From positions 80,500,532-80,564,531 of the forward strand of contig NC_068985.1 in assembly GCF_001194135.2 (NCBI RefSeq): a stretch of 64,000 bases of DNA. Reading direction: 5' to 3'. How positions within the stretch are numbered: the first letter of the stretch is position 1; the number at the start of each line of letters is the position of its first letter. The notes beneath the pieces are model-generated. The model was given only the letters and a program-made list of their open reading frames with translations. It did no database searches and was not told the origin of the DNA. Made by a program: the position numbers and the translations under genes. This document shows positions 23,968 to 26,900 of this stretch, piece after piece. The stretch comes from Octopus bimaculoides (taxonomy: Eukaryota).

Positions 23968-26900
23968 CTATAGATTGCAGTTAAGGCATAATATACAACA
24001 TCAACAAAACGATTTCAGGCAAATTATACAATGATGATGTGAATGAGATGAGATAGAGTGTGCAAGAGATAAAACTGTGCTGTTGCAGCTATGAGATGTG
24101 TATGGATTTTAAGAATTGAGTAAAGAATTGTCTACTGACCCAAGTGGAAAGAACATGTTGAAGAGGAATAAATGGTGAAATTTGAACATAATAAATAAAG
24201 AAATAGTAACAATTATAATTTCTAACACAGGCAGAATGACTATAAAAGTTGATTCAAGTAATCCTGGTATTTGACTGGTAGAGTTGGCTTCAACAGGATT
24301 TAACCCCTTAGCGTTTACTGCTCAGATATTCTATCTGTTTTATGTCCAAAATAACTGGATATAGCCTCTCACATATACTCTGCAATGTTCTTCTAAAACT
24401 AAACAACCACATCATTGAAATCTTTAAGTTACAAGATAATGCCTGATTAATTCAAACAACGTGAATGAATAAGCATTACATTTGATTGAGTAATCTGAGT
24501 ACTAAAGGGTTAAACCAGTCATGAGTAACCTATGGCCAACGGGACTTTCTGAATGGTATACCTAATGAAAAATGATCATGAATTTTTTTAGAAGTGCAGT
24601 CTGCCATTGATGATAACCCATGTCAAATACAGCTTGTTTCTTGAGAAAGGTTACCCAAGCCATACTTAAACATAAAAACTGTGAAGGGATTTAATTAAAA
24701 CCTGCAAGGCATTTTGTCTGATGTCAAAATGATTTCGTCAATCAAATGGTTTTCTTACCTTGACACAAGAAACTAAATGAAAGAGAGAGGGAGAGGGAGG
24801 GGGAGAGAGAGAGAGAGAGAGAAATATCATCAAAGTGATTAATATTTTATTAACTCTTTAGCATTTAAACTGGTCATATGTGGCCCAAATTGTCAAGAAC
24901 TGACCTCTTTCACTTACCCTAGAATAACTTTAAAAAAATATACAATCACATTATTGAAATCTCAAGGCTTTGAGATAATGCATGATTTCTGAATGCTAAA
25001 GGGTTTTAAACACACACAAAATGTAAAGTTGGCCATGGTGAAATTTGAACATGGAACATGTAGCTTTCATAAAATGTCAGTGCACAATTGCTTTTTCTTT
25101 TTGCACGCTTGCTCTTAAACACTTAACTGAAAATACTCAAATCAGCTGAATACACATCTAAGGTCAGCTACCTGTCAAAGTAGAATTATTAGTATCATAG
25201 GGATTGCTGTAAAAGAAAAAGAACCCCAAAAAGACTCACCCAACAAAAGTGAAAATATGTGATTACAACATGAAAAGGATACATTCATCAGTTGCTAACT
25301 CAGCTCTTTCTCCATATGCCAGCAGTACAGGTGTGGTATGTGTCTGAAAGCCTGTAATGGTCTTTGGTTTGCCTGCCTGACCAACGACATTTACTGCCTG
25401 AAATTGCAATAAAATTAAAGAATTACTCTTTGTAAAAATAAGACATTACAAGAAAAAAAAAACAAAAAAAAAACGACAACCAAAAACCCTGAAATAAAAA
25501 CAGTTCTGAGAGTTTGTACCCATGCTTAACAAGCTCAAAATTAAAGTTTCTGTATGGGTACCCAAGCAACAAGAGTTGTGTTCTTTATGTAACGCATTAC
25601 CCATTTTCTCTTCACAGCACTAAAAAAAACTAGAATGGGCTCAACTGCATTGTGAACCGACAATACACAAATATTCAAAACATTAATCATAAATCAGAAA
25701 TTAATTAAGGCAAATTTTGGGAACTGTGTGCAATTAAAATTGATCAAAGTACTTGTCTGGTGCTTATTGACATGCAAATCTCATTATAATAAAACTAATG
25801 TTTTATTGTTATTGCTTATGATCATGTCAACCCTGAATAATCAAAACTATGATCAAAGACATTCAAGCTATGACTATTCCATCCAGTTTTAAGAAATAGC
25901 ATGTTCTTCCTTTCCAGCAGGTCAAGCAACCATATTCAAATTCCCTTTGCTACTTGGAATTTTCAAACTAAGGAATTTGATATAATTTCAAACCTCACCA
26001 CTGCCATTGTGTAGCAAAGCTAAGATAACATTATTTAAATTCACAAGGCCTAACTACAGACAAAAGGAGGTGGAGGGGGACTGACCAATGTTACTGACAA
26101 GAATATGGTACATACAAAACACCCCAAATAAGTCAATATCTTGTGAAGTGACATTGCTAATAAAAATTTCTAACACTAGGACAAGGACACAAACTTTTGA
26201 AAAGATTTGATCCCAGTGCTCAACTAGTTGTCCATTTTATAAACCTTGGGAAAATGAATGGCAAAATTGACTTTTGAGATATTTGAACTTAAAATGTAAA
26301 CAGACGTAACAAAATACAGCAAGGGGTTTTGTCTGCCAATCTACCAATTCTATAAGGCCCCATAACTTGTGTAGGTTTAGTGATAAAAGAAAGAGTGGAA
26401 GAGTTAAAAAAAGTTTATATCTTTATAGGTGCAGGAGTGGCTGTGTGGTAAGTAGCTTGCTTACCAACCACATGGTTCTGGGTTCATTCCCACTGCGTGG
26501 TACCTTGGGCGNNNNNNNNNNTGACAACCAATGCTGGTGTGTTTATGTCCCTGTAACTTAGCGGTTCGGCAAAAGAAACCGATAGAATAAGTACTAGGCA
26601 TCCAAAGAATAAGTCCTGGGGTCAGTTTGCTTGACTAAAGGCGGTGCTCCAGTATGGCCACAGTCAAATGACTGAAACAAGTAAAAGAGTATCTAGTCAA
26701 CATGTTTTTTATATAAATGTCAACTAAATAAAAAAGGAAGTGAGAAGGATGGGAATTTGTACCAGTTAATAAGCAAAATATTACACCATATTAAAGAAAA
26801 TGTGTGATCCAATGTTTAATCTTTTAGCATTATATGTCATATCTCATTTACACACACACATCTGCACTGTGTCTTTGCACACTATGTCTCACATGCAGAG

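Follow-up and report, generated by a model that had tools for sequence, protein, structure and literature searches.

Minor (U12-type) introns carry a 5′ splice-site motif that pairs with U11 and later with U6atac, and a branch motif that pairs with U12 small nuclear RNA (snRNA). The intron examined here belongs to PSMD2 (Rpn1), the gene of a 26S proteasome regulatory subunit, on the minus strand of a 64-kb stretch of the Octopus bimaculoides genome (contig NC_068985.1). This stretch is called the window below, and coordinates are positions within it. Almost all minor introns are viewed as very old (PMC10639083; Basu et al. 2008, PMC2426677). They favour phase 1, and a survey that took in more than 3,000 genomes, with Octopus sinensis among the species compared, noted a relative enrichment in molluscs and the possession of all four minor snRNAs by glomeromycotine fungi (PMC10639083). 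Loss is a commoner fate of metazoan U12-type introns than conversion, and the literature stresses how strongly vertebrates have retained the class and how massively invertebrates have lost it (PMC2831892). We are highly confident that the 3′-most intron of O. bimaculoides PSMD2, at 25282..23968, is a genuine GT-AG U12-type intron, and the comparison of species set out below supports its presence, as a U12-type intron, no later than in the ancestor that fungi and animals share.

The gene had been named Rpn1/PSMD2 in an initial annotation made from the letters of the window, and its sequence identifies it as such. A spliced model of 565 residues is 100% identical to the UniRef O. bimaculoides PSMD2 entry, which carries precomputed PF17781, PF01851 and PF18051 assignments (RPN1_RPN2_N, PC-repeat and RPN1_C domains), and the C-terminal 190 amino acids of the model match the human PSMD2 chains of solved proteasomes with E about 1e-104. 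The exons were located with a human PSMD2 probe, and the C-terminus of Arabidopsis RPN1a was likewise used as a probe. Both served as search seeds only; the C-terminus of the human probe was confirmed by Protein Data Bank (PDB) alignment with the chains of solved human proteasomes, and the Arabidopsis probe by a 100% database match. The RefSeq protein XP_014782499.1 (903 amino acids) could be threaded exactly onto the window, giving 21 exons and 20 introns (Table 1). Exon 1 was looked for and not found in the window, and sits beyond it.

Table 1. Coordinates of the PSMD2 gene, its terminal exons and the signals of its last intron (slashes mark splice junctions, here and in the text)
Feature	Position	Strand	Remarks
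PSMD2/Rpn1 gene, in-window part	23900..58983	-	21 coding exons, residues 29-903 of XP_014782499.1, 20 introns
Penultimate coding exon	25283..25397	-	ends with T of Tyr codon
Very probable U12-type intron, GT-AG subtype, last (3′-most) of gene	23968..25282	-	1315 nt, phase 1
5′ splice-site motif GTATCCTTT	25274..25282	-	9/9 match to U12 consensus (/[AG]TATCCTT); single occurrence in window
Branch-point motif GCCTTAAC	23980..23987	-	7/8 match to consensus TCCTTAAC
3′ splice-site AG (...CTATAG/AT)	23968..23969	-	
Last coding exon	23900..23967	-	starts with AT of Tyr codon
Stop codon TAG of PSMD2	23902..23900	-	
(AG/CT)n microsatellite within intron	24782..24822	.	apart from splice signals, sole Octopus-Argonauta match; no role in the finding

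At the 5′ end of the intron the donor context reads ...GATGAAT/GTATCCTTTTCA, with upstream codons GCA ACT GAT GAA T and 25282 as the first intron base (AAT/GTATCCTTTT, spanning 25282..25273). The 3′ end reads ...TATGCCTTAAC-TGCAATCTATAG/ATTTCC, or over a longer stretch ...TATGCCTTAACTGCAATCTATAG, followed by AT TTC CCT CTC ACA... in the last exon. The final C of CCTTAAC lies at 23980, from which it is exactly 12 nucleotides (nt) to the last intron base, 23968; the branch A is presumed to be 23981, 13 nt from the intron 3′ end. The terminal dinucleotides are GT...AG. The strings of the donor and branch motif, their coordinates and the 12-nt spacing had all been reported in the initial annotation, and they proved exact to the base on the minus strand.

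We scored splice sites with simple matrices of our own that approximate the published consensus. On this scale the U12-versus-U2 score of the 5′ splice site, +14.3, is the maximum among the 6,987 GT sites on both strands of the window, and the branch-site score, 11.5 at 13 nt, ties the window maximum; a branch-site score of at least 10 within 6-20 nt is found for seven of the 7,169 AG sites. The other 19 in-window PSMD2 introns have 5′ log-odds between -3.3 and -28.3, branch-site scores of at most 4.7 and donors resembling GTAAGT, GTGAGT or GTATGT. Only the terminal intron, one of 20, is thereby classed as U12-type, as the initial annotation had it when it called all other visible donors U2-type; the matrix scoring it had proposed as a check places the intron outside the U2 range on these approximate matrices.

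Neither motif is unusual by itself in a window of this size and AT content: GTATCCTTT occurs once against 0.44 expected, and CCTTAAC-N6-16-AG twice against 4.5 expected. The case rests, therefore, on their joint placement and on their conservation. By arithmetic from the site-score counts, the chance of meeting both at two homology-defined exon edges is about 1e-7 per intron. One could still suppose that the intron is an ordinary U2-type one and that its likeness to U12 signals is accidental, and the single-motif counts, the GT-AG termini and a pyrimidine content before the 3′ splice site similar to that of neighbouring introns would all suit this view. However, AAT/GTATCC would be a very poor U1 site, and the joint probability just given is small. 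The 9-nt donor is, moreover, identical in eight other species in which the branch motif is kept and the remaining intron has diverged, and among 198 introns scored across ten species no similar one occurs outside a single alignment column. A chance resemblance is accordingly very improbable. The absence of a polypyrimidine tract, which had been listed among the U12-type features, stands in part: the 12 nt between the branch motif and the 3′ end (TGCAATCTATAG) contain no pyrimidine run, but the feature is not discriminating, the pyrimidine content at -30..-4 being 0.59 versus 0.52-0.81 in the other introns of this AT-rich gene.

Joining 25283 to 23967 gives an open frame in which T+AT makes a Tyr codon and the C-terminus matches PSMD2, which bears out the earlier reading of what splicing restores. 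The same junction is used in two independent public O. bimaculoides models (UniRef A0A0L8GBA9 and RefSeq XP_014782499.1), and the homologous junction is encoded in spliced form by a contig of 3.2 kb, which groups with cuttlefish PSMD2 in clustering and is presumably mRNA-derived, because it is too short for an intron-containing gene. Slow splicing and the activation of cryptic sites are familiar traits of U12-type introns, and the intron could be of this class and be spliced in vivo to another 3′ site, for instance the CAG at 23950, which would delete six residues, or be frequently retained. Such an outcome seems highly unlikely, however, since the conserved YFPLTPV segment is restored by no acceptor but that at 23968, whose spacing from the branch motif is optimal, and since both public models and the related cephalopod transcripts use the homologous junction.

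Orthologous loci from twelve species were collected and their C-terminal exons mapped. Nine of these other species have an intron at the same nucleotide (GAA or GAT, then GAA-T/GT...AG/AT) and in the same phase, eight of them with the GTATCCTTT donor. These eight, with their branch motif and the distance from it to the intron 3′ end, are the octopod Argonauta hians (ACCTTAAC, 12 nt), the bivalve Argopecten irradians (TCCTTAAC, 9 nt), the gastropod Haliotis asinina (TCCTTAAC, 9 nt), the annelid Owenia fusiformis (TCCTTGAC, 10 nt), the chelicerate Tachypleus tridentatus, a horseshoe crab (TCCTTAAT, 10 nt), the hemichordate Saccoglossus kowalevskii (TCCTTAAC, 16 nt), the echinoderm Apostichopus japonicus, a sea cucumber (TCCTTAAC, 14 nt), and the glomeromycotine fungus Entrophospora sp. 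(ACCTTAAC, 17 nt), whose intron is about 90 nt long. The branch A is thus 10-18 nt from the 3′ splice site in all eight. In the ninth species, the octocoral Paramuricea clavata (L009, about 3720-4316), the donor is GTATCTTTT and the branch motif TTCTTAAC, 11 nt from the 3′ end; both signals carry C-to-T changes with which G-U pairing with the snRNAs would remain possible, and the intron still scores as U12-like (+6.7 at the 5′ site and 9.2 at the branch). Either its U12 signals may have relaxed or it may be heading towards conversion. What the introns of Octopus and Argonauta have in common is limited to the branch region, the CT repeat and the 11 nt at their 5′ end, no conserved element beyond the splice signals and this simple repeat being found within the intron in that comparison, and outside the two motifs the introns of the compared species are unrelated. 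Such a pattern, in which only the donor, the branch region and a simple repeat are shared, indicates that selection acts on the signals themselves.

The comparison across molluscs, annelids, cnidarians and vertebrates that the initial annotation had called for thus finds the same site in the invertebrates and no intron in the vertebrates. Of the two histories it had offered, restriction to a lineage is refuted, the intron being shared by a fungus, a cnidarian and seven further bilaterians. A gain within cephalopods or molluscs would explain why the mammal and the teleost compared have no such intron, but the annelid, chelicerate, hemichordate, echinoderm, octocoral and glomeromycotine fungus share its nucleotide and phase, and we give this explanation practically no credence. 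The occurrence in a fungus could alternatively reflect parallel U12-type insertions in fungi and animals at a favoured proto-splice site, in which case the intron would be only of animal age. The fungal sample consists of one species, and an intron of the cotton Gossypium raimondii (L010, about 1845-1920) might hint at an intron-attracting spot: it is U2-type (GAAAA/GTAAGT...TTTTTACAG/GTAT, phase 2 in a Lys codon, score -17.9), lies 2 nt upstream of the site that the fungus and the animals share, and may be a converted, slid descendant of the U12-type intron or an independent one. Minor-intron gain has, however, been described as extremely rare (PMC10639083), and the position, the phase and both signals are identical in fungus and animals, with conserved flanking coding sequence (E-E/D-Y), so that parallel insertion appears quite unlikely and descent from a U12-type intron of the fungus-animal ancestor is the reading we retain.

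The remaining part of the history, the vertebrate absence, was approached through the whole gene. Exact structures for ten species, projected onto a protein alignment, comprise the 198 introns mentioned above; eight of them are U12-type, all in one alignment column and in phase 1. Nineteen intron positions are common to at least seven of the eight invertebrates, and the bear Ursus and the basal teleost Albula keep 18 of these, the U12-type one being the only one missing. Their terminal exon runs unbroken from Q/AVDVVGQ to the stop codon, and several short genomic open reading frames (ORFs) with vertebrate-like sequence also span the whole segment. The suggestion in the initial annotation that the segment is a single exon in human PSMD2 is borne out for vertebrates by these two species, in non-human DNA, and its second option, loss in vertebrates, is supported. 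The loss is a precise deletion, older than the teleost-tetrapod split and younger than the split from ambulacrarians.

Two further observations concern intron turnover in this gene. Ursus (L006, after residue 766) and Albula (L012, after residue 780) have an extra phase-0 intron at alignment column 833, whose absence from all eight invertebrates points to a gain in the vertebrate lineage or to loss elsewhere. In addition, an invertebrate-like genomic ORF in ENA and Logan contigs (P0034/P0509) continues unbroken across the U12-type site, between the upstream acceptor and the stop codon, which suggests an independent loss of the intron in an arthropod-like lineage. Among the named sequences compared, none exceeds 64% identity with the full-length cluster-mate, and P0034/P0509 could not be placed in a taxon.

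Several points weigh against the reading of an ancient minor intron deleted in vertebrates. The matrices are approximations of the consensus and differ from those of intronIC. Pyrimidines are hardly scarcer between the branch site and the 3′ splice site than at the same place in the neighbouring U2-type introns. The signals of Paramuricea are weakened and the intron of Gossypium, 2 nt away, is U2-type, which together would imply that the class can change at or near the site. With amphioxus, tunicates, lamprey and sharks outside the sample, the loss is bracketed only. Finally, dependence of the octopus intron on the minor spliceosome is argued from its sequence and from motif conservation. An Rfam scan of the window gave no hits, so that there is no snRNA gene in it, a result uninformative on octopus snRNAs or on elements of the intron.

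Use of the minor spliceosome at this intron would take the following course. The preformed U11/U12 di-snRNP (small nuclear ribonucleoprotein) would recognise both signals together, U11 on GTATCCTTT and U12 snRNA on GCCTTAAC, and the pairing of the latter would bulge out the branch A, which lies 13 nt from the AG at the 3′ end. U4atac/U6atac.U5 would then join, U6atac would take the place of U11 on the 5′ motif, and the intron would be removed, a step that may be rate-limiting, as it often is in this class. Excision would fuse T/AT into the Tyr codon and complete the RPN1_C domain, and a message retaining the intron would be translated without the last 22 conserved residues. Both signals have been kept in the molluscs, annelid, chelicerate, echinoderm, hemichordate and glomeromycotine fungus and, in weaker form, in the octocoral, and the intron was removed precisely in the lineage towards bony vertebrates. 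A likely route of loss is reverse-transcriptase-mediated recombination with spliced mRNA, which is 3′-biased; the 3′-most position of the intron fits this model of intron loss (reviewed in PMC10639083). A bolder proposal, which we consider quite unlikely, is that the intron has remained U12-type for about a billion years because it makes production of a stoichiometric proteasome base subunit depend on minor-spliceosome activity, as a regulatory valve on proteasome assembly with which bony vertebrates would have dispensed. It would then be one of the few minor introns of fungus-animal age, possibly older given the plant intron, that are missing from vertebrates.

Some features of the gene and its surroundings may be recorded beside these results. 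Other U12-like donors inside the gene were rejected, namely 53162, which is coding, 54707 and 41792, which lie within other introns, and 52088 and 54015, which are antisense; a further U12-like donor, ATATCCTC, is found at 21179, downstream of the PSMD2 stop codon. The UniRef octopus model (886 amino acids) omits a 60-nt exon at 48273..48214 on the minus strand that is present in the 903-residue RefSeq model. Its sequence differs strongly from that of Argonauta (ELDIEEPKLPEHIYKTSSESN), and its splice sites (GGAAG/, GTAGCTTCC) are weak. The RefSeq junction upstream of the exon is in phase 1, with its donor at 52043 (window 52038-52044, minus strand). If a GTAAGT donor at 52038 is paired instead with the TAG acceptor before 48277, the frame is likewise kept, and a phase-0 position conserved in all nine other species would be preserved. 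The window itself is a gapped scaffold assembly with 12 N-runs (e.g. 8200-9014, 13126-13919, 36833-37668, 49322-50017 and 51177-51331), and seven gaps fall within PSMD2 introns (26512-26521, 35838-35847, 36833-37668, 42129-42138, 49322-50017, 51177-51331 and 56398-56495); several of the "long ORFs" in mechanical ORF lists are translated N-runs only.

Downstream of the gene, ORFs at 1379-1831 (plus strand) and 15851-16775 (minus strand) contain the motifs ...GPYRVL... and ...RLYLKRNEGGRGLKSV..., which may resemble the tails of retroelement integrases and reverse transcriptases; a Pfam scan of five ORFs downstream of PSMD2 gave no match. Extensive (CA/TG)n-rich and related low-complexity tracts also occur downstream, at about 4619-5053, 10279-10626, 13950-14700 and 18680-18934.

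As to previous reports, no paper linking PSMD2 or Rpn1 with U12-type or minor introns was found, the searchable supplements of the two large surveys hold no gene lists, and the IAOD paper does not mention molluscs. Given a survey of more than 3,000 genomes and a public minor-intron database that spans more than 1,500 species (PMC10639083), the intron has very probably been listed automatically in genome-wide catalogues. It is not in the human, mouse and Arabidopsis sets of minor-intron genes, because it is absent or not U12-type in those species. The mechanism is that of textbooks and no new kind of biology is involved; the value of the case is comparative. The structure of PSMD2 is near-frozen across bilaterians, with 18 U2-type positions common to octopus and bear, and it offers a natural experiment in which the sole widely shared position deleted by bony vertebrates is that of the U12-type intron, a case invisible to human-anchored lists. 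The locus could also provide invertebrate model systems with a compact reporter of minor splicing.

Set beside the described GT-AG U12-type introns, the PSMD2 intron has the same rigid /GTATCCTTT donor, (T)CCTTAAC with a branch A at 13 nt and GT-AG termini. It also shares with the class its phase 1, its place as a single minor intron among many major ones in an old housekeeping gene, and the keeping of class by orthologous introns across phyla; there is no structural difference. Its 3′-most position differs from the 5′ bias that minor introns of human and Arabidopsis have been reported to show (PMC2426677); a later survey observed such a bias in plants only (PMC10639083). It resembles the ancient minor introns that animals share with fungi or plants (PMC2426677; Rhizophagus, Larue & Roy 2023, PMC10639083) in that site, phase and class are common to a fungus and animals, and it is a further well-documented case of such conservation. 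It differs from them in that the intron of the plant compared here is U2-type, not U12-type, and is displaced by 2 nt. Published conservation sets are, moreover, anchored on human minor introns, and an intron missing from vertebrates falls outside them. The exact deletion in vertebrates, leaving an intact codon, is like the precise losses described together with U12-to-U2 conversion by Lin et al. 2010 (PMC2831892). Compared with the general picture drawn there, however, the polarity in PSMD2 is reversed, eight invertebrate lineages having kept the intron and the bony vertebrates having lost it, a situation that is uncommon but not unprecedented.

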